NCBI GenBank assembly: GCA_028023455.1
Contig: JAQFVV010000010.1
Span: 14,818,001-14,882,000, forward strand
Length of the DNA stretch: 64,000 bases
Source: Epiperipatus broadwayi
Taxonomy: Eukaryota; Animalia; Onychophora
Direction: 5' to 3'
The notes beneath the pieces were generated by a model. That model searched no databases. It was not told the DNA's origin and saw nothing but the letters and a program-made list of their open reading frames with translations. This document shows, piece after piece, positions 1 through 62,777 of the stretch (the stretch's first letter is position 1; every line of letters begins with the position of its first letter). The translations under genes were made by a program, and so were the position numbers.

Positions 1-2396
1 CTAGTGGACTAGTTATTCTAATACATAATGAGCTCCACTGAATATATCTTCATTCAGTACATATTAATCTGATCATGATTGAGTAATTTATAACAAATAA
101 TTATCACTTGTTTCTTTGGCTTCCTGAGTTTATACTAATACAACCCAAGTATTTCCTCTAAAATATATGCACAGTGCCAATGATATAGTAATGATAGAAG
201 TTAGAAATGAGTTAAAGATTTGTATTTTATTGTACACCATTAACTTTTATTAAACAGTAATTAGAAAGGTATTATGTGCAATACTATGTATAATTTTTAA
301 ACAAAGAAAATACATTGTATTTTTAACAAAAATCACACTAGAATAAATTATAAAATTAAACATTTATAAAATGACAAATTGCTATTTTTATTGAAAGAAT
401 AAAATGAATATAAATTTCCCCCCCCCCCCCCAGCATTTAGCTGACTAAAAAAAAACCTGGAGAGCAGATTTTTAAACATGTTTATAAATAGTTTTTTAAT
501 AAGATTTTTTATGACGTAACATAATTTAGATTGTCAATTTTAATGACTGATATATATATTGTACATATGCCATATTTAAATAAATATTATGATTGTCATG
601 CTATAGTTTCAATTAAACATTATTTACATCATTCAATTTATCTTGAATCATTTTTGCATGCTGTATTTTCAGAAGCTAAATTAAATGCTTTGGAGAAAAA
701 TAGTTGCAAATTAGCATTAGAACTTAATGATATTAACATTTCTAATGGCTATAAATAATTTCTTGCTAGGCAGGATTTTTTTTTTTACCAACCTTTTTTA
801 GAGGAACAAATTAAAGAAATCAACATTATTCACTAGCCTAGTTAATAATAATAATCCTCTAGCCTAGTTAATAATAATAAATTGTCAAATAACTGTTATG
901 ATTGGCTATGTTGGATAGGAAATAATTACCACAAAACATTCTAAGTATATTAAAATCTTCAACTATCTGAAAAGATTTACAAATTCCATGCAGATTAGAA
1001 TCTCAACTTGTAGACATGACATGTGGAATTGCTAATGTACCATGAAATTCTTTCTGTAATAATCTAGATGACTCCAAATATTGAAGTACAAGAATAAATT
1101 ACATTTAGGATATTAGAAGCATTAATGGGAAACTATTATTAATCTTAGAGAAATATTAATGCTTAGTTGTGATAATATTATCGCCTAATTATCTTTACCT
1201 ATTTTCAGGTGAACTTATCAAAAACTACTTTAAAATGGATGGAGTCCAGTTGTAGGAAAAGTGATAAAACAAATAAACAATTTTAGAAGAAACAAGTTTA
1301 TCAATTCTTAAATCCAACTCAGCTAGGTCTCTTATTAGGAAAAGAAATTTTTTAGGTGATTTTATTAAAAATAATTGAAGTTTTTTTTTAAAAAAAAAAA
1401 ACAACAACATAAAATGAATTATCTGTTTTTGTTTTAATTTTTTAAAACCATTTATAGTTCAAGTTATTTTTAAAATGGAAAACATTTATTGTAGGAACAG
1501 TGGAACAAAATTTAAAATTGAAGATTTTTAAAATTATTTTTTCAAGATGTTATTAAAAAGATTTTTTGTATTAATAAAATAACTTCATTATTTTGCAATA
1601 TATATCTAAGTAGGATATGCAAAAATCTTTTATTAAGGAGATGGCAAGAAAAAACAGACCACTAGAAAGGTTTTTTGTTCCTTGTTTATAATAGTATTTT
1701 ATTGATTTAATTTTACAAATATTTTTAATATTAATAATAAAAATAATTACTTCTTTTATTTACATTACATGTTACAAATTGTTAAAAAGTACAGGATATT
1801 TAAAGTTGTACAGTAACATGAAATAGTTAAATGATTTATTGCATGGCGGTTGTGATAATTACAACCCCCGATTTATGAATCTTGAATTCCAAGGTTCATC
1901 AATCTATCCTTATATTAAACCACACAGATCAAAGATATAGTTAATTTATACCATTAATGTTTGATAATTTTATATTTTATTAAATATAATGCATCTTATT
2001 CTGAATAATTCATTATAAACTGATCCCAGAATAGTAAAGAAAGAAAAATATTTAAAGAAAGTAATTTTTGTTGGGGTGTTGTTTTTTAATCTTGATATCA
2101 TATAGCAAAACTGTTAATGTTTTAATCATAATTTATTTATAATTTTGTTAAAAAACTTCTTTAGCTTGTTTAATAAAATCTGTTATCAAGATATTCCAAC
2201 ATTATTATTTTTCTCTTCATTTTATTCATATTGCAGTTCTAAAATAAAAACATAAAAATGTTCTATTTCAAATTAGAAGAATTTTGAAATAATAGTTTGC
2301 AATTATTATTATTATTTAAGGGGCCTACTTATATTGAAAATACACAATAAAAAAATCTAACATCATTACAATAATCCTAAAATTCTATATTAACTT

Positions 2397-2634
2397 ATCA
2401 CATTCATATCGGCTTTTTCAAACCAAATTGTGCAAACGCTTTTTGCGAGTGTTAAATAATAAATGAATACCCTCTGACCCATACAAGATATAGAATTTAT
2501 GCAGCAATAAAAGATTCCTTTTATTGCTGCATAAATTCTATATCTTGTATGGGTCAGAGGGTATTCATTTATTATTTAACACTCGCAAAAAGCGTTTGCA
2601 CAATTTGGTTTGAAAAAGCCGATATGAATGTGAT
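2397..2634. repeat. Perfect 238-bp palindrome (117-bp arms, 4-nt loop), core of fold-back element P1 (about 2399-2676)
   Basis: 2397-2513 is the reverse complement of 2518-2634, with loop ATTC. 2633-2670 continues as the reverse complement of the 5' part of the unit seen at 2696-2740. Confidence 0.95.
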
Positions 2635-2691
2635 TACAATTGTATACAGACGCTATAAAAAATAAATGCTGATTTATATATTAACTTATGT

Positions 2692-3459
2692 AAATGAAGC
2701 ATTTATTTATATAGCGTTATGTTTATAAATTGTAATAAACTAAAGATCAGCTTTTCAAGCTAACATACATGCGCTTTTTACGAATGTTAATACTAATAAA
2801 TGAATACTTTCATTTCCAACACAAGATAAAGTCTTTACAAAAGAATAAATGAATCCACTCATTCTTTCAACCCAAATGCTTATATATGGGCAAATCTTAA
2901 GTACTGGATATGAAAGCATGAGGATAAACCAATCACTTTAAATTACTGTTTACTATGTCTGAATGAATGACGTCCACGGAATTATCTAGAATTTACGAAA
3001 CGTCACTCTTAAATGAAACTAAACATATGTAAATGAGGCATTTATTTATATAGTGCTATGTTTATAAATTGTAATAAACTAAAGATCAGCCTTTCAAGCT
3101 AACGTACATGCACTTTTTACGAATGTTAATACTAATAAATGAATACTTTCATTTCCAACACAAGATAAAGTCTAGTTTCATTTAAGAGTGACGTTTCATA
3201 AATTCTAGGTAATTTCGTGGATGTCATTCATTCAGACATAGTAAACAGTAATTTAAAATGATTGGTTTATCCTCACGCTTTCATATCCAGTACTTAAGAT
3301 TTGCCCATATATAAGCATTTGGGTTGAAAGAATGAGTGGATTCTTTTATTGTTTCTTAAAGACTTTATCTTGTGTTGGAAATGAAAGTATTCATTTATTA
3401 GTATTAACATTCGTAAAAAGCGCATGTATGTTAGCTTGAAAGGCTGATCTTTAGTTTAT
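2692..3459. mobile_element. Fold-back element P2, structure A-B-A-B(rc)-A(rc), with 15-bp TSD
   Basis: A unit of about 146 bp at 2688-2833 is repeated at 3027-3173. 2735-3021 is inverted at 3174-3459. Direct repeat TATATTAACTTATGT at 2677-2691 and 3460-3474. Confidence 0.85.
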
Positions 3460-4321
3460 TATATTAACTTATGTGAGTTTGTACATGCGTATAAATATAT
3501 CCACATATTTTTCTACCATTTTTTCAAAAATCCAATCAACCTAAACAAATAAAATGCCAGCATCTACTTGGGTAATCAAAATTTTGAAGTCGAGATATTT
3601 TGTTTTAGACCAAGGTAATTTTAGATGTATGGCAAACCTAATGAGCAGTTTTTAATGTAATTCCTGTATAAATTATGAATTTGAAAAATCAGATATAAGC
3701 ATATGTAATGATTATTATATTGATGCTCAAACTGTTAATTATAATAGATAGACAAGTTATGCAGAATTTAATGTACTGCAATTATGATATCTCCTAGAAT
3801 ATTTTTTTAAATCTTAAATATACAGTATTTATATTTATTATATGTGTAACAAACCATTATTATTTTTTCTCTCATTTGCCAATTTCTTTTACTTTACTAT
3901 CTTCAGTCATTTAAGTTAGATTAGGGCCCATTTGTTGTAACTTATTATGCGTAGTCATCCTTTTCCATTAATTGTAAGAATGGTAATGCATTTCTGTGAA
4001 ACCATATTTTTACCCTTGACTCATATGCACAATAATTTATTCAGATTTTATGCATATTGAACTTGATTAAGCAAATTAATATTTTTTAAAAATAAAAAGT
4101 TCCATTAAAAGCAGTAATTAATTTTATCTTGCTTGGGTAGGAAACATATAAGAAAAAGACGGGGAAAACATAATGGAATCATTGTATCCATTATCTCAAT
4201 ATCAATCAATTCACTTAATTATAATATATTAAAATAAAACAATTAAAAATTTATAAAAAAATAAGAAATTTAAATTTTCTATTTCACTTTACAATTACTA
4301 AGTATTGTGGTTAAAAACATC

Positions 4322-4522
4322 TTAGTTTATTACTAATAAATAACTCAAGATATAGTGGATTTTTTTTTTTATATAGTTCAGTATGTAAATGAATGCATCG
4401 TCATTTTTTATGCAATCTATGCCACATAAATTCGCCAGGGTATGAGTCGAGGTGTTGCCTTGATGTTCCTCACTTCTGCCCCAAAGTCTTTCAATGTTTT
4501 GTGTGTGAACAACCACATGCAA
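4322..4522 (-). pseudogene. Merlin/IS1595 (ISXO2-like) transposase C-terminal relic
   Basis: Translation VHTQNIERLWG...G.S...L...(D)AF.IL..IK resembles the HTQxIExxW motif after the catalytic residues of IS1595/Merlin transposases (recalled motif, not searched). Confidence 0.5.
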
Positions 4523-5327
4523 AAATTTTTGTAACCGACATTAAGAAGTTATGAAAACAAAAAAAAAAAAAAGGGGGGGGGGATGAACACTACGTCTACT
4601 TGCGCACTTAAAATCAAATGAACTGGAGTAACTCAGAAGTAGAAGTAATGTAGAAACATTTGGATGAAGCAAAAATGAAATGAGGCTGTTGTCAGAAAGA
4701 AATATGGACAATTACTGAAATGTCGAAATATCAAAAAAAAAAAAAAAATTACATTTTGATAAAGAGAAACATGTTTTCACAGGAGATCGAATAACATCAC
4801 AGGGTTTATTTCACTTAAATTTGACGTAATGACAAGATTACACATTTATTGCAGATATGAAAAGGCTACCATCTCCCCTACATTGCAGGAGTAATACCTA
4901 AGTACCAAAAATAATTAAATAGAATAAAGTTTTAGCATAAAATCTGATCATTATGAGCTTCTCATACCATTGGTCATCTTGTCTGTTTGTACAACCATAT
5001 TTACATTTTTCAATTATGTGTTATTCGTTTTTTCTTGTTATAAATATGTGTTAGTGTATTTATATCACAAAATGTTTTCTATTCACCCCTCCCCCATTAT
5101 CATCAATGACATCATTGTATATACTTCATAATAAACTTAAATGTTTATCAATTTAAAAATCTGTTTTATTTTACTATCAAGAAATATTTATATATATATT
5201 TGTTCAGCTACTCTTGTTTTTCTCAGTATAACATTACTGGAATTTGCAAGATTTTAAGACTACACTAATAACAAATCTGCTATATTGATATAATAAAAGT
5301 TCTTATTGATTTGTAAAGAAATGTAGT

Positions 5328-5484
5328 TATATATTAGACTTGTTGCGCGTACTTGCTACCGCCGTATCTTTCTCCAGTAGGAGTGGGGGTGGGGTAGTGG
5401 TGAGTTTGTGACGTGAAAATGCTGTATTAAAAAATCGCAACTACGGCATCCCGTCGCAAACACGAGCAGCGGGTCTAATATATA
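5328..5484. mobile_element. 157-bp CpG-rich MITE-like element with about 40-bp imperfect TIRs in TA context
   Basis: TATATATTAGAC at 5328-5339 and GTCTAATATATA at 5473-5484; similarity continues for about 30 more bp (ttgttgcgcgtacttgctac vs ccgctgctcgtgtttgcgac). Confidence 0.55.
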
Positions 5485-5523
5485 TTAGTACCCTATTTTG
5501 TTATTGCTGTTCTCAGCAGACTG

Positions 5524-5563
5524 ACCATGAGTAGGATGTGAAAACATCGAAAGTATACTCTAT
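5524..5563 (+). ncRNA. Putative minimal type-I hammerhead, A3:U8 core variant, copy 1 (helix I 3' strand decayed)
   Basis: ACC-ATGAGTA-G-GATGT(GAAA)ACATC-GAAA-GTATAC-TC: perfect helix II with GNRA loop, GAAA, palindromic helix III AGTATACT, UC cleavage site. Part of a ~95-bp repeat shared with 37759-37855. Confidence 0.55.
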
Positions 5564-7040
5564 ACAATAAATATTATTAAATTTTATATTTAAACTCTGT
5601 GTGACTATTTTTTCACGTTGATAGTACATTATATATTTTATTCTTTATATATATTAAAAATTATTACAGTTATTGTACCAGTTTATCAAAAGTAAAATTT
5701 CTAAATTTATTGATCTTGTCACTTTTTGAAGGTTTCACGATATTTCCCTCTCCCCACCAAACATTTAATCCTTTTCATAGAGATCAAAGCAGATAGTTTA
5801 ATCTGTTCTTGAGAGTGGATTCTTAGCAAGAGCTTAAACAGTTTTCCATCCCCTTTTTAATTGATTCTTAGTTATCCTTCTATAGAAAGATTTCTTGAAA
5901 ATATTGAAACCACTTTGCATTCATTGAGAATAAAGCATTTTAGTCACCTCAGTTAAGAATCGTACTGCTGACATTTTAAGAATCCATCAGTAGAAACAGA
6001 GGAATTGATGAGAGTTTCTGGCAGCGAAATATATTGCTAAAAGTTTCTTTTTAAAAGATTAAACAGAATGAAACTACCATTTGACTTCTCAACTCAGTGA
6101 GTGCTTTCATGACATTTTTTTTTTATTATTGTTGATTTTCTCCTTTGACTATACTTCTTTCTCTTTCTTACCTGGCTCTATCTTACATTCAAAATAAAAT
6201 GATTTTATTGTATATTGAAATATAATATCTTAAGAGCTGATAGCTTTTAAGAAAAAAGAATAATAATAAAGTGGTCATTATTTGTTTTCTGGCAGACCAA
6301 TCTAATCTAGATTCAAGAAAAGTATTTTTGATATTAAAAACATTTGGACTTTTTAATATATATACTTCGATTTAGTGCTTGTATGTATATTATTTGTGTA
6401 TATAGATAATCTAATCAATATATATTGTTCTGCAGTTTAGTTAATTTAAATCAGCTTGGTAAAAGCTATTGCAGTACGTGGAAGTATCAAATAATTAAAA
6501 ATAAAAAAGGTAAATGTTTGTGTATAATGTAAGTTTGGAATTGTAATATGATCCTAAAATGACAAATATTGTAAGTTAAATTCTAATAGCAATATAGTTA
6601 TTAGGTAACAAGAATACTGCTGCCAAGAAATAATATTTGATCATCTTCTGTGTTAGTTTGTTCTATTTTTTATAGTCTTAATAAAATTAGGATTCTACAA
6701 TAAGTTATAGTAAGAGAGTGTGCGGCATGCCATTATTAAACCATCATGATTTTGATCAAGTTTTATCTCTTGATTATATTATTGTCTTGTTGTTACTGTT
6801 TGTCTTCAATAAAGAACTAATCTACTCTATCCAAAGATGATGTTTGAGTTGGGGTATTTTTTTCTTTTCAATAATGACTATATATGTATAGAACTGTGTA
6901 CATTTAATCAATAACTTTGAAAGTATACAACTAATAAAAAATGTAATTAAACTTATAATAAATAAAAATATTTTTTCACCTTATAGTTTTTATTATGCGT
7001 ATTGTTTATGCAGATTTTTTTTTTTTATTATGATCGAGGG

Positions 7041-7373
7041 CAGGGGGTCCCCAACCCTATGCCCGCGGGCACCATGGCGCCCGCAAAACATTTTATGTGT
7101 GCCTGCCGCTATCCTAACACAATAAAAAATTATTTATCTGATACAAATAAATTTAATTTTTAATTTTTTTTAAAAATTATTGTATTATATTGTAATCAAA
7201 TTGTAAGGCATACTATTCTTTTACAGCGTAAATAAATATTTTTTTGTACATTATGTTATGTGTATTATTAACAATATCCAACTATAAATTTACATTGAAA
7301 AAATAAATGGTGTCCGCCACCTGGCGGGTATTATAGAATGTGCTCTTAAGTGCAAAACGGTTGGGGACTCCTG
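7041..7373. mobile_element. hAT (Buster/Charlie-type) MITE, 333 bp
   Basis: TIR CAGGGGGTCCCCAACC / GGTTGGGGACTCCTG; 8-bp TSD atcgaggg (7033-7040) / atctaggg (7374-7381); homologous copies at 57270 and 62778. Confidence 0.9.
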
Positions 7374-8559
7374 ATCTAGGGAAAAAGGCAACCTTGTCTT
7401 CAATCAACAAAAAAACAATGTTTATTGCAACTAAATGGTGTCTTAATTTACTATTTTACATATCTATATTGGATCTATAGATCTAAATAAATTATTTATA
7501 GATAATATAGGCATTTTTGACCAATCTAAGATGAATAATCTTAATGATTATTTTTTTATATATTGTATTAATATTCCTATCTACTTAAAAATCAGAAATG
7601 CCTTTAAATAGCTCTATATTCCGTAAAAGCCTTTCCTACAGTTCTCCAAAAAAGAACTGTGGCAGAGAAGCCCTTATTACCAGATGATGTTGATTTAAGA
7701 TTTTTCATTCTTTCCTTTTATTTTCCAACTAGAAACAACTAGTTTATACTGTGGATCAGATATCTGAAAGAAAATTATGGCTTATAAGTTAAAAATTTCC
7801 AAGTGATTCACATTCCAAAATCATTAGTTGGCATGGAAATATGCTAACCTCTACAGCATGAAACTCTACATATTTATCTCTTGGTTATACAGTATATATT
7901 TTTTAAGAGTGAAAATAATTATCAATAATGATATGGTCCCGGTCTCAAAAGTAGGATATCTTCCAAACGTCCAAACTTGATTTTAAACTAATTTTTTTCA
8001 TTATAAATTATTATTTAATACAAGAGGATGATTATATTCTGCAATTTGAATTTTAAATGACTTCAAATTTAGGAATTGTTTGCAGAACATATATTTAGAT
8101 AATATTTTTCAGGTGACATTTTTTAAAGAAATATTTCCAATTATTAATAAATCATAAAAGTTATTATTAATTCAACCAGAGTAAATTTTTATTAAAAGTT
8201 ATCTATGTCTTAACTATAAATAGCTTTTTTTTTCAATGCTTGATACATTTTTTTTTTTTGCGTGGGTGTGTGTTTTTTTTTTTTAAAAAAAATGACAGGG
8301 AATTGTCATTTTTGTATCTAAGAAAATAATAATAATAAATTAGTTGTGATTATTTTAATTTCATTCTACACTTTCCCATTCTAAACACTCAGAAATGATG
8401 GATAAAGGGTGCCATCTGAACCACCGTTCAAATTTCATATCACTAAGCCAAATTACAGATAAAAATATATATATACTTTCCATAATTGCTTGGCATTTAT
8501 CACAATTTTTTTTATTCTAAAGTAAATAATCATGTGAAAATAAGGACAAAAATGAGAGC

Positions 8560-9000
8560 TAATTAATTGTTGTTGTCATTAAATTATCTGCCATAAATTT
8601 GCTTTCATACACCATAACAAATCATCTCCAAGATCATTTCTTATTTCATTTTTTTAATACTTGTAGCTAATCCATCTTTAAGATCCTTAATTTGCTCCCA
8701 TACTTCCATTTCTTTTTCTCTTACTCTTTGCAATTCTTTTTAATATCTTTCATAATTTCTTTAAATAATTTAATAAAAGACTGATTAACCATTGCAATTC
8801 TCATTCTATTTTTTTTTTCTTCATTATTTCCATCATTAATTATACAGCTTCCCAAACATTTAAAAACATAAACTTACTCTGTAACTTAATTGTTAATGAT
8901 TTTACCTAGCCACATTTTTTATTGCTTTAGTTTTATTTGCACACATTTCAATTCCAAACATAATACAAAGTTTTTTCAATATTTTTTTTTTAAACCCCAT
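8560..9000 (-). pseudogene. Highly decayed RTE-like LINE RT C-terminal fragment
   Basis: Frameshifted pieces GIEMCANKTK, VYVFKCLGSCIINDG and RIAMVNQSF resemble the FKYLGS.I..DG...EI..RIAMA..AF motif of RTE-clade RTs. Confidence 0.4.
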
Positions 9001-9540: not shown

Positions 9541-9712
9541 CTCACACAATGGAGCAAGCTCTAGTAATCAATAGATGCTAGAAGGTTGTGCATATAATCC
9601 CTATCTACTGTCTACTCATCCAATATCTCCAGACTAGTTTTTAGTTTGTGGCTTTCATTGGTGAGGAGCCATGGACCTGAGAGCAATGCACTTAGATCTT
9701 TGGATCTAATGC
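9541..9712 (-). mobile_element. HHR family F copy (decayed core)
   Basis: Reverse complement reads ...ggctcctca-CCAATGA-aagccacaaacta-AAAA-ctag-tc-tggag..., then the same tail as 15088-15180. Confidence 0.75.
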
Positions 9713-10746: not shown

Positions 10747-10960
10747 TTTGCTATCTTAATTAAACTGAGCACTGATTATATATATGTGTGTGGGTGTGTG
10801 TTGGAGATGATGTTCTGGATTAAGTGATGAGTGCTGGTTCAGCCCAAAATACATATATTGGAAATCATTTATCTTTTTCGTATTATGTGGTCATGGGTGT
10901 CTGTTGTAGAAGATGGAATGGATGACTAAAAGTAATTTGAAAATCTGGGTTTAAATCTCC
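10747..10960 (+). mobile_element. HHR family G copy (decayed core GTGATGA...AAAA)
   Basis: Aligns by eye with 40047-40584 and 50269-50490; taa-GTGATGA-GTGCT-ggttc-AGCCC-AAAA-tacata-ta-ttgg at 10821-10861. Confidence 0.75.
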
Positions 10961-12751: not shown

Positions 12752-12857
12752 TTTTTTTTCCTCATGTGTCATAGCATCAGCTGGGAAGCAAACCCGCTAA
12801 CCCGGGACAACTGCTTGCAAAGCAGCCGTCGCTGGCGTCTCGACCACCAATGCTTGA
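12752..12857 (-). mobile_element. tRNA-Gly-derived SINE
   Basis: Reverse complement caaGCATTGGTGGTCGAG...GCTGC-TTTGCAA-GCAGT...GGGTTTGCTTCCC..GATGCTATGACAC plus A tail; strongly similar to 27228-27298. Confidence 0.8.
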
Positions 12858-14027
12858 GATAAAAAATGATTGCTGCTACATATATAAGCACTATATAAAT
12901 GAAATTAATGAATTTCTAAATTTTTTAAATTTTTATTTAATATTTATTTGAATCATAGTTTGAGACTGGAACATGGTAAAATTGTATACTGCATTTTTTG
13001 AGAAGAGAGAAAAAAGTAATACTACACATATTTGCTTAAAAAATAATAAATTAGTTGATATGAATATTAGCACTTTTTAAAAATATATTTAATAATAAAC
13101 TATTTTTCAAACCATTTATTTAAAAATTTTGAAAATTAAAATTGCTTAAATATCTGTAAATTTATTTTATTTCATTAAACATCCCATGATTTTTTTATTT
13201 ATTGCTTATGATAATTATACAATAATTATTTTGCAATCTTTTTTTTTTTAAAAAAATTTTTAATGTACATTAAATTGTGCAGTATGTCATTTATTTTAAC
13301 AGGTAAGATTTAAAAAAAATCTTGTTTGCATAATGTTCGAATTTATTATTATCTAAATCTCTGCCTATTTTAATGTTACAAGAGGTTTGATTTTTTCATA
13401 CTGTAATTCATGATATCAGAGATTATGAAAGATTATTTTATAATATAAAAAGGAATATATTGTGCTAAAGGGATAAATAATAAATTTCCACCTATGATAA
13501 TTATTTAATTATTTATAATACCCTATTTGCATATATAATTTTTATGAATATATTTAAGGAAAATCTTATTAAACTTTTTCTCCTAACATTACCAATAATT
13601 GATTATTATTATTATTGGCCAGTTATTATTTTATATTTACAAACTCTGACTATTTTTGATCAAACTGTTGCTTTTTTTACTTTCATCTACATTTTTTTTT
13701 TTTTAAATACATGTTGTATTCATCGATATATTTGACAATATTTATACTATTCATCATAAACTGAATGTTTAATTTTATTTGAAATTAAATTGATACTAGG
13801 AGTCTCTCTGTACAGTATTTTTAATTATTGTAAGCTTACAATCACTCAGTGTACGTTTAATCAGCTTTAAAAAATTTAATTATGTAATTCTAATCTGAAA
13901 AGGTCAATCAAACTATAAGAAAGTTTTAGCTTTCAGCAGATCATTGCCAGAACCATAGTGCTGAAAAAATATATACTATTGAAAATTTAATTATTTATAT
14001 ATAAAAGTAGGTTGAAGTAAAGAGATT

Positions 14028-14130: not shown

Positions 14131-14688
14131 ATTATTTATATAAGAAGACAAAATGTTTTAAATTGAATTCAAAATTATAAAAATTTAACATTATGTAAAG
14201 TGATAAGAAATTTGGATAAATAATGCATCAAACCATCAACACTGAATTACCCCCCCCCTTCTTTATTTTTGTTTTCTAGGAGCCTCTGAGTAGAATTTTT
14301 AATTGTTGTAAATAAATAGATAAGTTCTTTTACTAGGTATTAAAAATTTTAATTATTTAATTTAAAATTACAATATGCAATTTCAGGAATTTAAATTGAA
14401 TACTCATTTGGCATTCACAGTAAGTAAATAATCTTAGCATCTTTCATTAGAAGTCTATTTCCAGTTTTTTTATTAATTAGAGTTCTGAATTATTTTGAAC
14501 AATCAAATTAAAAAGCAGTAAACAACTTATAAAAATCAAAGCATGCTACTTTTTGAATTTTTTAGGTTTTAATCATTTTTGTATTCATTTCAAAGACTAC
14601 ACCTAGAGTTGATATTTCATAGTGCTTGTTTAGAAGTTAAGATTGATGGCGAAACCTTGTAAAATAAAATATCTATTGGTTGATGGGT

Positions 14689-22203: not shown

Positions 22204-22239
22204 ATTCAACTGTTAGTAATAACACAAAGTTTAGTATAT

Positions 22240-47517: not shown

Positions 47518-50268
47518 ATATATATATATATATATAAGATATGCATTAGACTCGCATGATATATGTATAAAGAATAAGTATCATGATTACTTATGAATTT
47601 GTTACATTTTAATAACAATATAGTATAGGTAGGTAAAAAAAATAAAACACTCTTTAAGTAGGCAATAGCATGGCAAAGATTTCATCAATTCACCAGTGAG
47701 GAACAGTGTAGGAGAACGACATCCATTTATCAAACAATATTACATTGTTAGCTGGATTGTTTTGGGGCTGTCTATTTGAAGGAAAATTTAAACCTAGTTA
47801 GAGTCTAAAAAAAAAATTATTTTACAAGCTTGAATTTAAATTTAGGTCATGGGCATGGAAAAAGGATATGCTGCTATGAGGCCTTTAATATAAATCTATG
47901 TGTAAATAAATGTAAACATGGTAATGTATATTAATTATATATTTTAAAGAAGAATGCAAATATGGTCAAAAAATTTTTTAAAAAGCATTAAAATATTATG
48001 CATATCTTTATTTACTTATATATATTATTTATATTCAGTGCCAAGAAGGATGAGATATTAAATTGTAAATATTAAATTAAAAAAATATGTTCTGCATTTA
48101 TTTTAAAATATCATCATAAGTATCTTCCTTATTAAATCATTTTTACTAAAATAATCTTGAAATGGTGAATATAAAAATATTCTGATGCATTAATAATTTA
48201 AAATGTCGGCTTTTTTTCTCAAAACTATTTTAAAAATCGATAATCACAAAGTAGTCTTAAACTAGTTGTATGAGTGTAATACTAATGTTAACTAATTCTT
48301 TTACATCTACCAAGTTTATTCAATTGTGCTATATTCTATGAATTCTTTAAATTCCTAAGTGTTACATAATAAATATAATTTTTGTTTTAATTTTTTTTTC
48401 TAGACTAAACAATTTGTATACAATCTTTTTTTTTTTTTTTGTGACTATATATCATTTTAAAGACTTCATTATATCTATCCTTTTTTTTTTTTGGATTTTC
48501 CCTTCATTTTTCTATGCATATTCACAATTCAAGGATTTTCTAATGCTTTTCTCTTGTGTAATTGATTGTTTATATCTGTGGTTTATATCTATCCTTTTTT
48601 AATTGTCATTTATCTAAATATTCTATGTTCTGTTGTACTTTTTATTTACATGAATATCATATTTTATTTCAAATTCTTTAATATATAATAAATGAATATT
48701 AAAAATAAGCATAAATAAATAATTGTTTCATTAAATTCTTCTAATTTGTTTTTTTCTTCTGTTTTCATTTTACATTTTATTAATAATTTTTCATTTTTTT
48801 ATTTAAAAAAAAAAATGCATATTGTCGATAAATAATGTATTAACTTTGCATCTTTTACTTTGTTTTGCGATAAAATATTTTTATCTTGTAGGTGACATAG
48901 AATAGCCTTATCTATTTATTTATTATTCAGTTGCTGACTTCTCCAAATTAGTATTTGTTTTTCCATGTACCCTTAAAATATGATTGCGTACATTATTTTT
49001 TGTTAAAAGACTTCATGGTGTAGTAGATAGCACAGTTACTTGCCTTGAACATAACCTGGGATTTGAATTTGGATTGCATAGACTTTGAAATATTTCCAGA
49101 TTATAATTAAGTTTAACAATTTTATTTTTTAGATTGTCAGCCTATAGACAATGGGTCAGAAAATGGGTATCTAATTATTCTCAATTAGAAGGTAAAACAA
49201 ACAAGGAAAATTTTAAGCTCTCACTAGCTAGTAATTGGCTAGACTAATAAGTAATGCTGTCTTCATTTGTTTCACTTTGGGAAACTATTGGAGAGGCCTT
49301 TACCAAACAGTGATTTATTTAAAAGCTATTTTATATCTTGCCTTTATATTATTTTTACAATAAATAAGCAAAATGGCCAGACTCTGATAGTGTTAACAAC
49401 ATTTTTGATACTGATAAGTTCTTCCATGCAAACAAACTTCAAAATTACAATCAGTTATCCAAGAAAAACAATGTATTATAATTGTTAGTACCAGTAGTCC
49501 ATAAATAAGGCTCAATATCATTTTAAAAATTGAATATGAACATTTTATCTTTAATGGTAATTTTAATGTGTTTTGGAAAGCAACGAGAAAAATATTTGAT
49601 TATAATCTACAGAAAACAAAAAATCTATAGGTCCAAAATCTTTAACAATCAATGTTTTCACAGTTTTTCATCCCATATATATAAATTTTGTATTAATCTT
49701 TTATACGTACTAGGAAATAATTTTTATTTTATTGCACTCCACCCCCACCCACCACCATTAGTTTCTTTTTTTAATAACTGTTTTTTAAGAACTTGGTTAT
49801 CAATATTATCAGATTCCTTGTGTCAATGGCTATTTTTTATTGTATTACTGCAATGATTTTTTCCCTCACAGATCATTGATTATATATAAGAATAATAATC
49901 AAATATTATTTTGATGTTAATTCTGGCGGAAAAACTTACCATTCAATTCTTTAGTTAAATTTTTGAAACTAGAAAATTAGATTGCTGGGGCATAATTGTC
50001 TATTTTGATTTTCCATGATTAAATATGAATTACATGTGTTTTGTTGGATTTTTTCTACGATTTATACATAATGTGTTTTTTTTATTATTATATGTATACA
50101 AAACATTTTATAATCATTAATACAAAATAGTCGTCACACATTATTTTTATTAATTGTGAGATCTTTCAAGTTTACTTAGACTTCTAATAATGCTGTTATT
50201 AATGAGACTAACATTTTTTTGATGAAGGCTTAATCTTGACTTTACTTCTTTAAAGTCAAGTATGAAGA

Positions 50269-50490
50269 TTGGCTATCTTAATATAAATTGAGCACTGATT
50301 ATATATATGTGTGAGGATAGTAATCTAGACCAACTGATGATTGTTGGCTTAGCATGAAATACGTATATTGGTGATTATTTATCTTTTCAACATGTGTGTG
50401 ATCAGGTGGGTCAGCAATATAAGATGGCACTGAGAGTAGTGGGTCGTGTGAAAGTCTGAGTTCGAATCCCGCATATATTACATATATAAA
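50269..50490 (+). mobile_element. HHR family G copy with downstream B-box-like GAGTTCGAATCCC
   Basis: Aligns by eye with 10747-10960 and 40400-40584. Confidence 0.8.
50329..50372 (+). ncRNA. Type-I hammerhead motif, family G, core intact
   Basis: ACCAA-CTGATGA-T-TGTT(GGCTT)AGCA-T-GAAA-TACGTA-TA-TTGGT; 5-bp helix I, palindromic helix III ATACGTAT, UA site at 50367. Confidence 0.85.
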
Positions 50491-52781
50491 TGCAGGTTTA
50501 AGCCTGTACAATGTATTTCTTTAAAGTAAATAAATTTTTAACTTACTATACATTTTTAGTACTATCTTCAAAACAGTGAATAGATTATGCTGAATAGTTG
50601 ATTCAGTAGTAAGAATAAATACTTCTAGAGCACAGTATTTTTTTTATTATTCCTGAATAATTAACTCGAGACGAAGAAAAAAAATCAGTCTTCCTAATAA
50701 ATGAAACTGAAGTGAGTTGCTTCTTTTTTCTGCTCTTTGGATCTTGCTTGTTTTCTCAGCAAATGATATTATAAGTAATTAACAGCAGGCATCATAATAT
50801 ATATATTATCTTAAACTTTATTATTATGCATTGTTTTAGATCTAACATTTTCTAAAATGATTTATCTAACACTTTGCAAAGAAACATTTTTGACCTTCAT
50901 CATATACAACAGCTGTGATAATTTACAAAAAGGCAGCAGCTTGTAGAAAAAGGTTACTGTAAGAATTTTAAAGATTTATAAATAAACATTTTTCATCAAA
51001 TTTCATGCAATTCTTATGTAGTCTTGCCAACCTCTAACTATCTTAAATATCAGTTGTTACTATATATATTTAATAAGATACGTTATAGTATATGATACAA
51101 TTTAACTACAAACCACATCTTACAAGTAAAAACTAGAAATAGATTTGTTTAAAAAAAAATTGCCAAATTTTTAGATATTTTGATTGAAAAATAATTGTAG
51201 TATTGTTTAGTTCATATATATTTATGTTTATAATTGTGATGTCTCTCTGTGTTGTATTTGTAATTCATAAGTTTGTGATTTAGCAGTTTCAAGGTGCCAC
51301 TTACATTTTATTTAATATAACCGATTTTAAACAATTTATTTAAATAGAAAAATTGAAATCTTCAACTACACAGCAGTTGTTGCATTTTAATGATATAAGA
51401 GATGGAATAGAATTGGTCAAAGAGGTGCAAGCAAATGGAAGTTACCACTAATGGGAATCATGCATTTTTCATTATTGAAGGATTACATTTTCTAGTTACC
51501 ACAACTTGCCTCATGCAGTGTTCATATATATATATTCACTGTATACTTTGAAAGTCACATAATTCTCACTTTAAAAAAAAAAGTGATGAAATCCACAAAG
51601 TAGTTTTTATTTTTAAACATTACTTAACCTTCCAAGTAAATTTATCATATAAATAAATGATAATAAACTTTAATCAGAATTCATTTTAAAAATGTAATTT
51701 GAAATGTAATTATGAAGACTACAATATTTCAAATGACTGATTCTAAATGCCTATCTACCATTGGTAAGAGTGATTATTGTTCAAATGGAAGAAATAAACA
51801 ATTTCTATAACTGTAAGAAATATCTGATTCACTTCACTATTGTTAGCATATTTGTGATTGTCGCTGATATACATGGTCAACCAAAAAAATCAAAAATAAC
51901 AAAGCTGAAACAGCATTTTAAATAGACCTCTTCAGAATATTATCATCACCAGTAGCTCTTCATTGAGGGATGGTGAAGGATAAGGAATTATTTACTGGTT
52001 TGGTAATTGTTAGCTGGGTATGTTAGAGTGGTTTTCTTATTTTTAATTCTAGCTGAGATTAAATTGACATAATTGTTTAGTTATATGTCATCAGTAAGAA
52101 GTCTGGGTTTAAACAGGGTTAAATTATAAGCATGATTATCATATGCTTAACATTTAATCAGTTACTTCTCATTATATATATATTTGAGAATTACATTGCC
52201 AGGAAGATTAATGTGAAGAACTTCAAAGTATTTTTGAAGGCATTTGATAGATAGGGAAAAAATAATACCTTTGCTTCACTTTAGATATGAGAACAGTATT
52301 TAGTAAAATATTGAATTTTGGTTTTGTATAGAGTAAGAAACTTTTCATGGAAGGAAGGAAGGAAGGGGGTGAGGGGGGGGGAGTTTATGTTCATGCCGAA
52401 AAGATTCATTAGAAAAAATGGTATTCATACTTATGACAATAACATCCCCCTCGATGGCACTGTTGCTAGTCAAAAACAAATAGATATAATGTTACCGGGC
52501 TGATTTTACCTTTTTTTATTATTTAAACAAATAAATATAACTTTGTTGTTTTATTTTTTTTAAATATTACATTTTTCTAATTATTTATTTATTCAAAAAC
52601 AAATAGATTTGACTTTGTTCTTTTATTTCTTTAAAACATTTTTTTTTAAAAAAAAATAACGCTTTCGTTCTTTTATTTCTTTAAATCATCTCATTTTTTC
52701 TCAAATAACGCTTTCACGGGTTTCTTTTTTTTTTCAAAATACGTATCTTGTTTTTAAAAAAAAACACATTATTTTCTAAAT

Positions 52782-55243: not shown

Positions 55244-55509
55244 AAACAGGCAAAACTCACTATACTATGCCACACACAGCAAGCTAGAGTAATCAATGGA
55301 TGCCAGAAGGCTTGTGCATAAAATCCCCATCTAGTGCCTACTCATCCAATATCCCCAGACTAGTTTAGAGGGGGATTTTATGCACAAGCCTTCTGGCATC
55401 CATTGATTACTCTAGCTCGCTGTGTGTGGCATACGTATAGTGAGTTTTGCCTGTTTTAACAACAGTTATACACAAGCATAAGAGATGGTGGTCATGTGAT
55501 ATTTATTGG
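55244..55509. mobile_element. Family F fold-back, truncated inside the HHR, perfect 14-bp TSD
   Basis: About 85-bp near-perfect arms around a spacer ending in ccccagactagttt (HHR 3' half, minus strand); CTTATTAAATATTA at 55230-55243 and 55510-55523. Confidence 0.9.
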
Positions 55510-56184: not shown

Positions 56185-56297
56185 TTTTTTTTTTCATATG
56201 TCATAGCATCGTCCGGGAAGTGAACCCGCAGCAACCGTCTGCAACCAACTGTTTGCTTGCAAGGCGGCTGTGCTGACCTCTCGGCTAACAATACTTT
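56185..56297 (-). mobile_element. tRNA-Gly-derived SINE
   Basis: Similar to 30283-30397 and 35764-35880. Confidence 0.8.
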
Positions 56298-56987: not shown

Positions 56988-57030
56988 TAATATGACAGTT
57001 TCGATTGCTCCAGCAATCTTCTTCAGAAAT
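56988..57030 (-). ncRNA. Minimal hammerhead motif, family K, core intact
   Basis: Reverse complement attt-CTGAAGA-A-GATTGC(TGGA)GCAATC-GAAA-CTG-TC-atatt; helix I is weak. The partner at 57078-57120 (+) has CTGATGA but lost G12. Confidence 0.7.
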
Positions 57031-57221
57031 ATCTTTTATATATTTTTTTATAGAAAAAGAATGATTTTATATAAAAGAAATTTCTGATGAAGATTGCTGG
57101 AGCAATTAAAACTCATATTAGGTTGTAAAAAAAGCATTGTAAAAGAAATAAAGAACATAGATGATATTAATGTTATATGAATTTGGCAATGCAATAGGAA
57201 AGATAAAGTTATAATACTTTA
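56988..57221. mobile_element. 234-bp double-hammerhead fold-back element (family K) with perfect 14-bp TSD
   Basis: Inverted arms 56988-57042 / 57067-57120; TAAATATATAAAAT at 56974-56987 and 57222-57235. Confidence 0.85.
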
Positions 57222-57269: not shown

Positions 57270-57568
57270 CAGGGGTTCCCAACCCTATGCCCGTGGGCAT
57301 CCGCAGACCATTTTATGTGTGCCCGCCGCTATCCGAACACTATAAATAATTATTATCTGATACAAATAAATTTAATTTTTAAGATTTCTTATAAATTATT
57401 GTATTATATTATAATCAAATTGTAGGTCATACTATACTTTTACAGCGTAAAAGAGTCTATCATTAACAATATTCAACTATAAATTTACATTGAAAAAATA
57501 AGTGGTGCCCGCCACCTGGCCGGTATTATAGAATGTGCTTTTAAGTGCAAAAAGGTTGGGGATCGCTG
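57270..57568. mobile_element. hAT (Buster/Charlie-type) MITE, 299 bp
   Basis: TIR CAGGGGTTCCCAACC / GGTTGGGGATCGCTG; perfect 8-bp TSD ACTTAGAT (57262-57269, 57569-57576). Confidence 0.92.
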
Positions 57569-58625
57569 ACTTAGATTACTGAGTTTGATCAACTTTTAAG
57601 TTTTAAAATAGCTTGGTAATTTTAACATGTATAGGAATAAAATGTAATTAATATATCTATTTCATAAGGAATGTTAGAATATAAATTATTCATATTAAAA
57701 ACATTTCATTTTTATAAAAATGCATCACAATAATCATTTTTTGTTGCTGTTAATAATTCATATATTATAATTTTGTATGAATATTATTACTTAAATATAT
57801 TTTAATTATTACCTATATTATATTTTTTTAAAATTTGTAGTCAACAACCAGGAATAATACTAGAGCTTTAAAATAAAGAATTCAGAAATATTGTGCCTTT
57901 ATCATTTATCCTTGATCTATATATATAAATTTGAAAGTTGGTTTGTTACTTAAAATATTGTATCAATCTTAATGAATCCATGATTTTCTTTCTTTTTCTA
58001 TTAACATGAGCATAACTGTGGAGACATTTAATTTAAATATATATCAAGGATTATTTACATTTAAACTTCTTTGGATACTAAACATCAGCAAATTAATCTC
58101 TATATATTTATGTACATATTTTCTTCAAATTAAAACATTTTAGTAGTACTAAAAATAAGTATTCCATAATATGGCCCAAATATTTCAACTGTAAATTATT
58201 TTCCGTTTTTTAAAATATTAATTTTATAAAAAATAAAAAGTAATTTATATCATTATATATATGTATAACATTTTATATTACATGTATTTTATTGTAAAAT
58301 ATGTTTATATAATACAAATATTATTTAACTAATTGTGAGTTGTTAAAACTAAAGCACTGGGTTGATTCTCTGGATAGGTATTGAATAATGAAAATCAAAC
58401 TAATAAACAAATTTTACTCTTTGATTTATAACCACATCAATAAACTAAACTTAAAAGCATATGAAGCTAAAAAAAAAAAAAGGATGATATCCTTCTTTTC
58501 TTTTCATAGTTTATTATTGACGGTTGACTATTGATTAAGAGTAATTCAATTGGAGTTGCAGTTCTGTTTCAATTAAATATTATATAACTATATGTGTATT
58601 TACAAAGCAATTGCATTATATATTT

Positions 58626-58735
58626 ATCAGCCTTTTACAGCTATTGTACATGCGCTTTTACGTGTGTTAAATAATAAATGAATACTTCCACTGCCAATAC
58701 AAGATATAGCATTTAAGAAAGAATAAAATGAATAT
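58626..58735 (+). repeat. Dispersed diverged copy of the family P unit
   Basis: atcagccttttacagctattgtacatgcgcttttacgtgtgttaaataataaatgaatac...aatacaagatatagcattta matches 2404-2500 and 2745-2850. Confidence 0.75.
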
Positions 58736-60067: not shown

Positions 60068-60164
<97 letters not shown>

Positions 60165-61310
60165 TAAAATAGTTATAATATTAATGTAGTGACGAATGTC
60201 CTAAAAAAGTTTCAAGAATTAACAGGTTCAGTAGTTCAGTCTAACAAATCAGCAGCATGACAATTGGCAACGGATAAAAAGATATCACCCAAATTTATAG
60301 CTCCATCAAAGTTATTTCTTGGATTGACATTACATATGTCAAAGACACATATGAATGGTCATTTAAATCGGCTAATTAAAAAAAAAATAGAAGAGAGGAT
60401 TAATAATTTCACATCGTTCAAGCTCTATGAAGTGATGAGAACTCAATTGTTCAATGCAATTGCAACAGGGGTCCTTAGTTATTACAGTCCATGGGTAAAA
60501 CTATGTAACAAAACAATATGTAATATAAACCAGATGACTAAAAAATTTATCTGGGGGAAGAAATCTAGGTTATTGTCAGTCGCAATATTACTGTTGTTCA
60601 TTAATGAGGGAGGGCTTAACTTAGTTAATCCAAAAGTATACATAAATTTTATTGCTGCAAGAACATTTTTAAATGTTATGGAGGATCAATGCTTTAATCC
60701 ACCAACTGGTGACATAAAAATATATAGTGAAATAAGAGTGAAGAGGAGATCTTATTTTGCAGATATATTTATTGCATATAAGGACATACAAGATGAGCTA
60801 GATGTGCAAAACTTGAAAGGCATTACATATAAAGACATAAGAAGGGAAATAAAACCTCAATACTCATGGGTAAATTACTCAATGAAAGGGGTCCTAGGTA
60901 AATTCCACTCAATTTATACACTACAGGCATAAATGAAATTCATATTCAAGTTGATCAGTGGAGTTTTACCGACTATAACATACATTAATAAAAGATTGGG
61001 AATGAGTTTAGAGGAAACTTGTTCATTTTGTAAAAATAAACATGAAACATTTCAACACTTACTCGAAGAATGCAGTGCTTTTGGAAGGCTAATATACAGA
61101 ATTTTCCACACCCCAATGATAAATCTTAAAATGTTACTGAAGCAATATGTAATAAAATTCAAACCACATAATTCAATGGTGATGATACATATATTGAAAA
61201 CTATATGGACAATCCGATGTTCTTTAATATTTGATAATAAAAAATTTAATTGGTTGAAGAAACTTGGCAAAGATTGGGACAACTATTTTGGTAGGTGTTT
61301 GAAATACTGA
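59430..61310 (+). mobile_element. L1/Tx1-type LINE ORF2 relic (RT plus CCHC knuckle)
   Basis: KDKS...LRNLSIEDIDSKILA, IDFKSAFDT, FQGSPLAALLF, TAFINDI, FQELTGSVVQSNKS, GGLNLVNP, CSFCKNKHETFQHLLEEC; ORFs 60264-60932 and 60933-61310 are in one frame, split by a single TAA. Confidence 0.88.
60071..60163 (+). repeat. (AAT)31 microsatellite
   Basis: 93 bp of perfect AAT repeats. Confidence 0.97.
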
Positions 61311-62186
61311 CCTAAGAAGGTTATGGAAAGAGTATGGGGAGGGACTGCTATGACCACTTGTGAAATGTGGGAGTAAAAATAGACACACAAATAGAGAATG
61401 AGATGGTAAAAGTATGTAAAGTGATAAAATAAAGGATTTCTCAAGAGTGAATAAAGGTTCCATGTTTAAACTAGGAGTACGAGTTGTATGGTATAACTTT
61501 AGGATTTAAATAAGGAAAATTATATTAACTTTATAACAATGAGAGACTTATAGACTAGCATTGTGGTGTTTTGAGGACAAAATTGGTAAATTTATGGTAA
61601 TGGATAAATATAAAATAAAATATCAATTTGTGTCAATTGTTAATTGGTAATGGATAAAGTGAATCAAAACTAATTTGTAGATATTTCCTGTGCATATTTA
61701 GAGGTTTGTTTAATAAAGCTTACTACTTAAAATAAAATTTTTTTTTTTCCTTTTCTGATATGAAACAAAGAATTGGATAATTTTTTAACTGTGATCACGT
61801 TGCCAACAATATTTTAAGAAAAATTCCAAATTTGATTTTTCATATATATGTGTTTACACTTTCAACAAAATTTTAATACATATTGTAAACATAAAAGAAA
61901 GATTACTATAAGAAATAGAAAAAAAGAGGGGGGGTATATATGTATGTTTTAATAATTATTATTATTATTATACATTTTTATTTTAACTCTAATCATATAT
62001 TTTCAATAAAATGCTGCCACCAGCAAAACACTGAACAGGATTGATTCTGATAGGAAGAAAGTATTTTATAGAAAGAAAAAAAAAAACTGGAGAAAAAAAC
62101 AAAATTCTAAAGTACACCAGCATCATAAAATAAAATACAATTCTCTCCAAATTCTGTGAAACTCTTTTAAAAAAGTTGTACTGTGT

Positions 62187-62639
62187 ATTTTTATATTGGA
62201 CTATTTCCATCATCTAATATGTATGTTGAATGTCTTTAGAAAAGTTTAATTTTATTTAAATATTCCAAATACATTCAACTGTTAGTAACATCACAGCAAA
62301 CAAGTTAGTATATGCACCAACTGTTAGTAATATCACAGCAAATGGGTTAGTATATGCACAACACAACACCTGAAGAAGAGGGGAGAAAAATACCTCTCGA
62401 AACATTGTGTATATATATATACTAACCTGTTTGCTGTGATAGTTGGTGCATATACTAACTTGTTTGCTGTAATATTACTAACCTGTTTGCTGTGATATTA
62501 CTAACAGTTGGATGTATTTGGAATATTTAAATAAAATTAAACTTTTCTAAAGACATTCAACACACCTATTAGATGATGGAAATAGTCCAATATAAAAATA
62601 CAGCTAGAACACCATCATCACAAACCTTCAGGAAAACAA
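62187..62639. mobile_element. Family H fold-back element with central hammerhead and 11-bp TSD
   Basis: Left arm 62187-62360 is inverted versus about 62405-62600; TTGTACTGTGT at 62176-62186 and 62640-62650; lacks the tRNA head. Confidence 0.9.
62366..62410 (+). ncRNA. Minimal type-I hammerhead motif, family H, core intact
   Basis: ACAC-CTGAAGA-A-GAGGGG(AGAAAAATA)CCTCTC-GAAA-CA-TT-GTGT; helix III ACAT is probably CpG-decayed ACGT. Confidence 0.8.
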
Positions 62640-62777
62640 TTGTACTGTGTCTTTAAATGTAGATAATATGGAGCTTTCTAAGAAATGATTTTTTGCAGGT
62701 TTTTGAAAGCCTAGAGATGTTAATAATTACTTTAATGTCCAAATTTTTTACTCAGTAGATTCAATTATCTGATAGAT

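Follow-up and report, generated by a model that had tools for sequence, protein, structure and literature searches.

We analysed a stretch of 64,000 nucleotides from the onychophoran Epiperipatus broadwayi (contig JAQFVV010000010.1, positions 14,818,001 to 14,882,000 of the forward strand; hereafter the window, position 1 being its first letter). The source assembly, GCA_028023455.1, comprises 5.6 Gb in 18,588 contigs. The window is AT-rich (GC 25-28%), and no long open reading frames (ORFs) were found in it beyond fragments of retrotransposon genes. It contains copies of five repeat families, here called F, G, H, K and A3-U8, as well as a decayed Penelope-like element (PLE). About 17 sites in the window carry a hammerhead ribozyme (HHR) motif, intact or decayed; all of them belong to high-copy repeat families of which the consensus carries a minimal type-I HHR. 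We consider it highly probable that these sites are copies of the minimal HHR of PLEs, four of them intact, within retroelements that were inserted by the reverse transcriptase (RT) and the GIY-YIG endonuclease of PLEs. The carriers fall into three classes. The first consists of PLE 3′ ends, namely the decayed PLE at 16.8-18.5 kb, the A3-U8 family and the H unit. The second comprises the non-coding, tandemly arranged and retrozyme-like families F (~455 nt) and G (~475 nt), and the third is the short K family, with the HHR near its 5′ end.

The motifs were searched with a descriptor of the type-I hammerhead that asked for helices I and II of no fewer than 4 and 3 bp, respectively, with one unpaired nucleotide tolerated on either side of helix II, and for CUGANGA, GAAA, A15.1 to U16.1 within 2-10 nt, and H17. 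An earlier, stricter descriptor, which admitted an extra base at one side of helix II but not at both, gave a single motif and was then widened. In total, four intact motifs were found in the window (15052-15093, plus strand; 45413-45376, minus strand; 50329-50372, plus strand; 62366-62410, plus strand), compared to 0.23 ± 0.52 (maximum 2) in 40 dinucleotide shuffles. The remaining sites are decayed homologues, recognised by aligning the consensus motifs of the families back to the window. Typically, C3 has become U or G in these copies, and G8 or G12 has become A; CpG transitions account for many of these lesions. By family, the window holds five to six motifs of F, four of G, three of H, two of A3-U8, two of K and one at the PLE 3′ end. 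The original prediction, made from the sequence of the window, had listed about 17 motifs ranging from intact to decayed and had expected their number to exceed that in shuffled sequence; both claims were borne out.

The consensus sequences of F, G, H and K have an intact catalytic core (C3 U4 G5 A6 N7 G8 A9, G12 A13 A14, the A15.1-U16.1 pair and H17), so that CUGANGA, GAAA and UH are kept as had been anticipated, and the A3-U8 family shows a covarying AUGAAUA instead. Helix II measures 3-6 bp across all families. Helix I of the consensus is 5-6 bp long in F, 5 bp in G, 4 bp in the main K subfamily and 3 bp in H and A3-U8. The helix III strings are ACUAGU in F, AUACGUAU in G, ACGU in H, AGUAUACU in A3-U8 and ACNGU in K. 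Written as DNA, the first four read ACTAGT, ATACGTAT, ACGT (ACAT or ATAT where decayed) and AGTATACT. These four are palindromes as the prediction had it, whereas ACNGT of K is palindromic except for its middle base and hence no true palindrome. An extra base between A9 and helix II had also been noted and is indeed present. In F and G, however, unpaired nucleotides lie on both sides, so that an A.A (F) or a U.U (G) takes the place of the G10.1-C11.1 pair, which is present in H, K and A3-U8.

Pairwise blastn searches (word size 7) between F, G, H, K, A3-U8 and the PLE 3′ region of the window gave no significant similarity, with E>0.09 for all inter-family matches. The shared motif is therefore not due to common descent of whole elements. 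The helices differ wholly in sequence between the families around one and the same core; within F, a few compensatory changes are seen between subfamilies. When the consensus motifs were folded by minimum free energy (MFE), the hammerhead helices were obtained for H, K and A3-U8. Judged from their sequence, the four intact motifs and the decayed ones are PLE-type minimal HHRs that occur in several families without mutual similarity.

The PLE and the families that form PLE 3′ ends are represented in the window by:

16822-18472, minus strand: decayed PLE with YGLPKIHK (N-terminal), RYLDD (RT) and GVYEIP...YVGQS (GIY-YIG), interrupted by stops and frameshifts
16691-16730, minus strand: HHR-like motif ~90 nt behind the PLE ORF, ACC-UUGAUAA...GAAA-UAU-C|GGU, with a U3-A8-type core and a disrupted helix II
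5517-5568, plus strand: A3-U8 motif that has lost helix I, comprising AUGAGUA, AGUAUACU as helix III and GAUGU/ACAUC, capped by a GAAA loop, as helix II
37766-37817, plus strand: A3-U8 motif with G5 to A (AUAAAUA) and a 3-bp helix I, ACC/GGU
21950-22713: full-length head-to-head pair of H copies that meet at their tRNA-like heads
22290-22234, minus strand: decayed H hammerhead
22528-22583, plus strand: decayed H hammerhead, G8 to A
62187-62639: H fold-back in which an inverted copy accompanies a forward copy beginning shortly before the HHR, with an 11-bp target-site duplication (TSD) TTGTACTGTGT (62176/62640)
62366-62410, plus strand: intact H hammerhead with CUGAAGA, an extra A, a 6-bp helix II GAGGGG/CCUCUC, GAAA, helix III ACAU (consensus ACGU) and helix I ACAC/GUGU

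The H consensus reads CUGAAGA, A, GAGGGG, a 9-nt loop, CCUCUC, GAAA, CGU, U, GUG. In one of the fetched family loci (L068:651-1361), 37 nt separate the H unit from the stop codon of the 237-aa GIY-YIG ORF that precedes it, and the same layout is found in a second locus (L082:891-1334). H is thus the 3′ untranslated region (UTR) of a PLE and therefore not an independent RNA parasite. The 3′ ends of H copies lie at position 380 (34 copies) or at 343-352 (29 copies). Its head, ~100 nt upstream of the hammerhead, contains GGCTCAGTTGGTTAGAGCG and, ~60 nt further on, GGTTCGAATCC, which we read as a putative D-arm/A box and T-arm/B box, respectively. Twenty-seven H copies begin exactly at this tRNA-like head, and head-to-head arms are joined there. 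Neither ARAGORN (H, G and F loci) nor Rfam (H and G heads) called a tRNA, so the promoter reading of the head is kept as a suggestion: the copies that begin there suggest that a short, SINE-like (short interspersed element) form of H is transcribed from it. The consensus of the A3-U8 family, built from ten fetched copies, is ACC, AUGAAUA, U, GAUGU-GAAA-GCAUC, GAAA, GUAUACU, C, GGU. The motif at 16.7 kb behind the decayed PLE has the same frame as the A3-U8 motif. Both belong to a PLE 3′ UTR or pseudo-long terminal repeat (pLTR) and are no separate RNA parasites.

Family F is represented in the window by:

14689-14816, minus strand: inverted 5′-truncated copy, unit position ~389 to 259, with the short 3′ end that lacks the tail and its inner end in the HHR at GAAACTAGTC
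14815-15250, plus strand: forward copy that spans 437 nt of the ~455-nt unit and includes a 46-nt tail; 15-bp TSD TATTGGTTGATGGGT (14674-14688, 15251-15265)
15052-15093, plus strand: intact hammerhead with helix I UCCUCA/UGGGGA, CUGACGA, helix II A-GGU..GCC-A, GAAA and ACUAGU; predicted cut after C at 15087
55244-55509: fold-back, inverted arm to 55365 and 5′-truncated forward copy from 55366; 14-bp TSD CTTATTAAATATTA (55230/55510)
9620-9670, minus strand: decayed hammerhead (CCAAUGA, AAAA)
39150-39365: head-to-head pair with a decayed HHR at 39210-39258 (plus strand; CAGAUGA, GAAC) and a partial inverted copy ending in CUGAUGA (39.18 kb)
45373-45416, minus strand: intact HHR belonging to a diverged subfamily, with CCUCA/UGAGG as helix I, AGC/GCU as helix II and ACCAGU as helix III
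~45440-45500, plus strand: decayed forward partner of the 45.4-kb copy
19761-19881: F-related 3′ parts, head-to-head with 59-nt arms, no HHR kept

The F consensus, derived from 56 copies in the fetched loci, is UCCUCA, CUGACGA, A, GGC, loop CACAA, GCC, A, GAAA, CUAGU, C, UGGGGA. We found 45,689 exact intact F 30-mers genome-wide and none with the reversed pattern as a control; a 17-mer spanning the predicted cut site occurs 89,280 times. Subfamilies show compensatory exchanges in helix II (GGC/GCC versus AGC/GCU; A.A versus U-A), as well as a change from U.G to U-A in helix I. In the fetched loci, F is repeated in tandem with a period of 455 nt, in which the copies are split by an 18-nt spacer, and genome-wide the spacings are 452-456 nt. 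The family was also found in Logan contigs from public runs labelled with several organisms, the run type being uncertain. In contigs from public runs, a joint goes back 443 nt (from 15258 to 14816), which fits a tandem DNA copy and a circle alike; ends of molecules were not seen in these contigs. No ORF of at least 120 aa was found in the F and G units. Two CTGAGGA strings (45471-45504, plus strand; 45384-45351, minus strand), which pass the descriptor when helix I is lowered to 3 bp, consist of helix I of the F motif plus flank and were rejected as separate ribozymes.

F copies end at unit position 437 (~60 copies) or at 391-397 (28 copies), and the tail between these ends measures 43-46 nt. 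Truncated 5′ ends show a modest, weak excess at unit positions 259-273 (15073-15087 in the window), with 12 of ~89 ends where ~3 were expected. The cluster directly follows helix II on its 3′ side and lies ~8 nt upstream of, rather than at, the predicted cut; it may reflect RT stopping at the folded motif. The inverted arm of both F fold-backs in the window (14.8 kb and 55.36 kb) stops at AAACTAGTC; the fold-back at 55244-55509 has no complete HHR and keeps only the part from AAACTAGTC on.

Family G is represented by:

50257-50516, plus strand: 5′-truncated forward copy without an inverted partner; 11-bp TSD TTCTTTAAAGT (50246/50517)
50329-50372, plus strand: intact hammerhead with ACCAA/UUGGU, CUGAUGA, U-UGUU..AGCA-U, GAAA, AUACGUAU and H17 = A
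40062-40590: fold-back with 139-nt arms; 14-bp low-complexity TSD (40052/40620)
40221-40172, minus strand: decayed hammerhead, C3 to U
40422-40472, plus strand: decayed hammerhead, G12 to A
10815-10865, plus strand: decayed hammerhead (GUGAUGA, AAAA)

The G consensus is ACCAA, CUGAUGA, U, UGCU, loop GGUUU, AGCA, U, GAAA, UACGUAU, A, UUGGU. Exact G 28-mers number 49,151 in the genome, compared to 0-1 for reversed-pattern controls across F, G and K. From the 46,000-49,000 exact motifs per family, the total number of F and G copies is probably several hundred thousand each. Tandem G copies are spaced by 473-476 nt, corresponding to a unit of ~475 nt. When the G motif was cofolded, the palindromes paired with each other. 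The G unit also contains A-box/B-box-like strings (GAGTTCGAATCCC, window 50440-50475) ~70-100 nt downstream of the hammerhead; within a tandem array these would precede the ribozyme of the next unit.

Family K is present as a single pair:

56997-57126: head-to-head pair, neither copy of which forms helix I
57026-56998, minus strand: motif CUGAAGA-A-GAUUGC-UGGA-GCAAUC-GAAAC
57084-57113, plus strand: decayed motif (UAAAAC)

The module found on the minus strand is also the family consensus, with 500 exact 29-mers among 1,113 sites that share the hairpin; sites that depart from it do so chiefly by CpG decay. Genome-wide, the exact core plus stem occurs 9,528 times. In the main subfamily it is flanked by AGUU upstream and by CUGU-A and then AACU downstream, which gives a helix I of 4 bp. 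That K forms an HHR family therefore holds for the genome consensus, and not for the window copies, which form no helix I. We had considered K as a non-hammerhead because its window copies lack helix I or III, a view overturned by the genome-wide consensus, which forms both. K head-to-head pairs are numerous in the genome lists, with the copies 29-106 nt apart. Judged from this spacing, K is a short element with the HHR within a few tens of nucleotides of its 5′ end.

Most of the motifs had been described as lying in an inverted partial copy plus a forward copy. Eight insertions in the window show this layout (F at 14.7, 39, 45.4 and 55.3 kb, G at 40 kb, H at 22 and 62 kb, and K at 57 kb), the 5′-truncated G copy at 50.3 kb standing alone. 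The five TSDs of 11-15 bp that had been noted were likewise found, measuring 15 and 14 bp for F, 11 bp for H, and 11 and 14 bp for G; another of 13 bp is present in the fetched locus L062. In the fetched loci, neighbouring copies are oriented minus, plus rather than plus, minus at ratios of 38:0 (F) and 14:0 (H). In unbiased lists from the first megabases of contig C1, the ratios are ~20:0 (F) and at least 15:1 (G). The inner junction points differ from copy to copy, as 5′ truncations do. Poly(A) is absent from the insertions, and both F and H have two alternative 3′ ends 30-45 nt apart; in the F insertion at 14.7 kb, the tail is carried by the forward copy but not by the inverted arm.

Head-to-head-only junctions, an optional tail and TSDs of 11-15 bp constitute the published signature of PLEs. 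PLE insertions have been described as partial tandems with an inverted, 5′-truncated copy at the 5′ side and a tail of 30-40 bp (Evgen'ev & Arkhipova 2005; Craig et al. 2021, PMC8557442). The tail has been explained by two internal RT start sites, with both DNA strands being cut and extended (Frangieh et al. 2024, PMC11167929). The F tail of 43-46 nt compares with the 30-40 bp of these PLEs, and the architecture is borne here mostly by short non-coding units, in contrast to the ORF-bearing copies of the published cases. F and H bear the same footprint, and H is physically the 3′ UTR of a PLE. Since F, G and K are non-coding, mobilisation in trans by the RT/GIY-YIG protein of a PLE is their best reading. 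The proposal that several non-coding parasites are mobilised in this way is thus supported for F, G and K, while H, A3-U8 and the 16.7-kb motif turned out to be PLE 3′ ends.

These observations can be combined into a model. A unit or multimer RNA would be bound in trans by the PLE protein, whose GIY-YIG endonuclease would make staggered nicks and thereby give rise to TSDs of 11-15 bp. Two internal sites, 30-45 nt from each other, would serve as alternative starts of reverse transcription, leaving an optional tail, and priming from both DNA ends would set the forward copy head-to-head against an inverted one truncated at its 5′ end. The hammerhead, with its self-complementary helix III, would act as a dimer on multimeric transcripts and free RNA of unit length, which would perhaps be circularised. 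Both the tandem arrays and a helix III able to pair with itself are in keeping with the published model of cleavage as dimers. The motif, the structure of the families, the footprint of insertion and the physical connection of H with a PLE ORF are observed, whereas we infer the transcription of the units, their self-cleavage and circularisation, and the identity of the PLE that would mobilise F, G and K.

The motifs agree closely with the minimal HHRs described from PLEs. According to Cervera & de la Pena (2014, PMC4209133), these have a nucleotide between A9 and position 10.1, a palindromic sequence formed by 15.2-16.2 and loop 3, and a helix I of 4-5 bp (2 bp in Drosophila virilis). They form many heterogeneous consensus families per genome, occur as opposite-strand pairs 100-700 bp apart, include a U3-A8 core variant, keep a ‘highly conserved’ G10.1-C11.1 pair and number 2,000-9,000 motifs per genome. 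The window families share with them the type-I topology, the extra nucleotide after A9, the short palindromic helix III that implies dimers, the short helix I, the presence of several families per genome, the opposite-strand pairs, the place behind the PLE ORF in the pLTR and the U3-A8 core. H, K and A3-U8 match this description exactly. Differences are that one high-copy family has A3-U8, whereas only U3-A8 was reported in 2014; that A.A or U.U replaces G10.1-C11.1 in the two most abundant families, F and G; and that tens of thousands of exact motifs are found per family, compared to 2,000-9,000 per genome. The possible novelty raised in the prediction does not extend to the kind of element: several families per genome, opposite-strand pairs, the extra nucleotide, the palindrome and the core covariation were all reported in that study. 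A density of about one motif per 4 kb is of the same order as that reported for Schistosoma mansoni, with ~38,500 HHR matches by blastn (PMC2770079).

F and G can further be compared with the animal non-LTR retrozymes described by Cervera & de la Pena in 2020, which are regarded as non-autonomous PLE derivatives (PMC7229834; preprint by Li, Clavereau & Pollet, 10.64898/2026.07.22.740005) and have been proposed to derive from PLE pLTRs. Shared features are a non-coding, AT-rich unit, a single type-I HHR, tandem as well as dispersed copies and a TSD of more than 4 bp. The units of 455 and 475 nt lie at or slightly above the top of the retrozyme size range (150-450 bp). Invertebrate retrozymes mostly contain canonical HHRs with loop-loop contacts, whereas F and G are of the minimal PLE type. 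Circular RNA has been demonstrated for the animal retrozymes. H resembles Sm-alpha, which together with Sj-alpha combines a tRNA-derived Pol III promoter with a hammerhead (Ferbeyre 1998 and Laha 2000, as cited in PMC2770079 and PMC6765202), in that a tRNA-like A-box/B-box head and a hammerhead are combined in a short high-copy element. Unlike Sm-alpha, H doubles as the 3′ UTR of an autonomous PLE; the divergence of its head precludes a tRNA call by ARAGORN or Rfam, and its HHR is minimal instead of canonical. The kind of element is thus already known from the minimal HHRs (2014), the animal retrozymes (2020), their tie to PLEs (2026 preprint) and the Sm-alpha SINEs (1998).

Several observations weigh against this interpretation of the motifs and of their carriers. 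Rfam was proposed as a check, and its Hammerhead models (Hammerhead_1, RF00163, and related models) matched neither the window nor three family loci (9.7 kb), whether the gathering score or a limit of E<=10 was applied. This is expected for a helix III of only 1-4 bp, as the Rfam models expect a longer one. Rfam matches of the window to miRNA precursors are driven by its hairpins and were disregarded. Per-column conservation within F and G showed that the HHR columns are kept no better than their flanks, so that the recurrence of the motif across families is the sole sign of selection on it; the lack of excess conservation is as expected for young copies that decay neutrally. In MFE folding, F and G monomers favour other pairings, which is not decisive. 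Helix I is limited to 3 bp in the consensus of both H and A3-U8. The place of G10.1-C11.1, scored in the first 100 genome matches of each family, is taken by A.A in 83 and by U-A in 15 of 100 F motifs, and by U.U in 75, G.U in 15 and G-C in 6 of 100 G motifs. A canonical base of helix II thus exists in F and G, as a minority. Such an A.A or U.U may cripple catalysis. Moreover, inserted copies hold the whole motif, which means that the template RNA was either uncleaved or re-ligated, contrary to a strict need for cutting. Finally, no PLE ORF adjoins F, G or K in a 290-kb sample.

These points lend some weight to an alternative in which the motifs descend from hammerheads that are now dead and were kept as an element for dimerisation, PLE binding or RT pausing, with cleavage no longer used. 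The top subfamilies of F and G lack G10.1-C11.1 and yet have tens of thousands of exact copies, the G-C subfamily of G being a small minority (6%). For a PLE tested in vitro, HHR cleavage was dispensable for insertion, and no RNA ends were found at the HHR site in Anolis (Frangieh et al. 2024, PMC11167929); moreover, Naiad PLEs proliferate well without an HHR (PMC8557442). The excess of F 5′ ends at 259-273 would also suit an RT that stops at the folded motif. However, CUGANGA, GAAA and UH are intact in the consensus of every family, with N7 as the sole freely varying core position, and dimerisation or protein binding alone would not require such a core to be kept. A nucleotide after A9 is tolerated in known hammerheads and compatible with activity (De la Pena and Flores 2001, in so far as cited in PMC4209133), and tandem arrays of units are the substrate expected for a processing ribozyme. 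On balance, we regard this alternative as possible, although doubtful. For F and G in particular, which both spread once A.A or U.U had replaced the otherwise conserved G10.1-C11.1 pair, we tentatively suggest either an uncharacterised hammerhead variant that is tolerated, or dispensable catalysis with the motif acting as a signal for dimerisation or RT handling.

F, G and K might instead be mobilised by a non-PLE RT of the LINE (long interspersed element) or RTE type, with their HHRs as mere passengers. Fragments of such RTs, matching RVT_1 and zf-RVT, lie in the window at 44.3-44.7 kb and 60.3-61.3 kb, PLE ORFs are missing next to these families in the 290-kb sample, and hammerhead SINEs with LINE partners have been discussed (PMC6765202). 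We consider this improbable, as the motif is of the PLE minimal-HHR type and the footprint is PLE-specific: junctions are head-to-head only, the two 3′ ends lie 30-45 nt apart, poly(A) or microsatellite tails are missing and the TSDs vary in length. That the fold-backs are DNA transposons of the MITE (miniature inverted-repeat transposable element) or Foldback type, with terminal inverted repeats and chance HHR strings, is hardly credible: their long inverted repeats with short spacers are matched as hairpins by Rfam miRNA-precursor models and by no Rfam HHR model, but the arms are unequal with an extra tail on one side, the inner junction varies per copy like a 5′ truncation, many copies are single forward or tandem, TSD length varies between 11 and 15 bp, and the motif exceeds shuffled sequence (4 versus 0.23) and recurs in the consensus of five unrelated families.

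Insertion by PLEs thus remains the preferred explanation. The PLE footprint can be read even from short non-coding units, which supports the published idea of animal retrozymes as PLE dependants, and the current picture of PLE hammerhead elements is left unchanged. For specialists, the very high copy number and the series of variants at the helix II base and at the 3-8 pair may be noteworthy. These natural variants (G-C, G.U and U.U, or A.A and U-A, at the helix II base; C-G, A-U and U-A at the core pair) bear on whether PLE hammerheads need to cut. If catalysis were indeed dispensable, the purpose of the PLE hammerhead could be tested by comparing the G-C, G.U and U.U subfamilies of one element. 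As Rfam misses all motifs found here, the ribozyme content of such genomes is underestimated.

Other repeats were observed in the window. The non-PLE RT fragments show that other retrotransposon classes are present within the same stretch:

44256-44702, minus strand, and 60264-61310, plus strand: ORF fragments of non-PLE RT, with a weak RVT_1 match and a zf-RVT match

Two fold-backs without a hammerhead motif lie side by side at 2386-3475, with a related piece at 58672-58727. The first is a perfect palindrome with 100% complementary arms (2397-2513 and 2518-2634), and the second has arms of 292 nt that are 96% complementary. The string (T)ATATTAACTTAT occurs three times (~2387, 2678 and 3461), as if a target site had been reused or duplicated twice.

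A tRNA-derived, SINE-like family with GGTTCGC(G/C)TCC in its head, unrelated to the hammerhead families, is present at 12753-12860, 19150-19255, 30287-30395, 35766-35877 and 56185-56296; ARAGORN calls the copy at 19150-19233 tRNA-Cys(GCA). In addition, a tRNA-Gly(UCC) at 27228-27298 (plus strand) was found by Rfam (31.9 bits, gathering score 29) and by ARAGORN, and may represent either a genuine gene or the head of a SINE. It adjoins a repeat of 149 nt at 26968-27116; an inverted partner of this repeat (93% complementary) lies 20 kb away at 47369-47517. Lastly, a dispersed repeat with a GC-rich start (GGCGCCCGCA...) was found at 7044-7379, 57296-57574 and 62780-63430, its copies being 86-90% identical.

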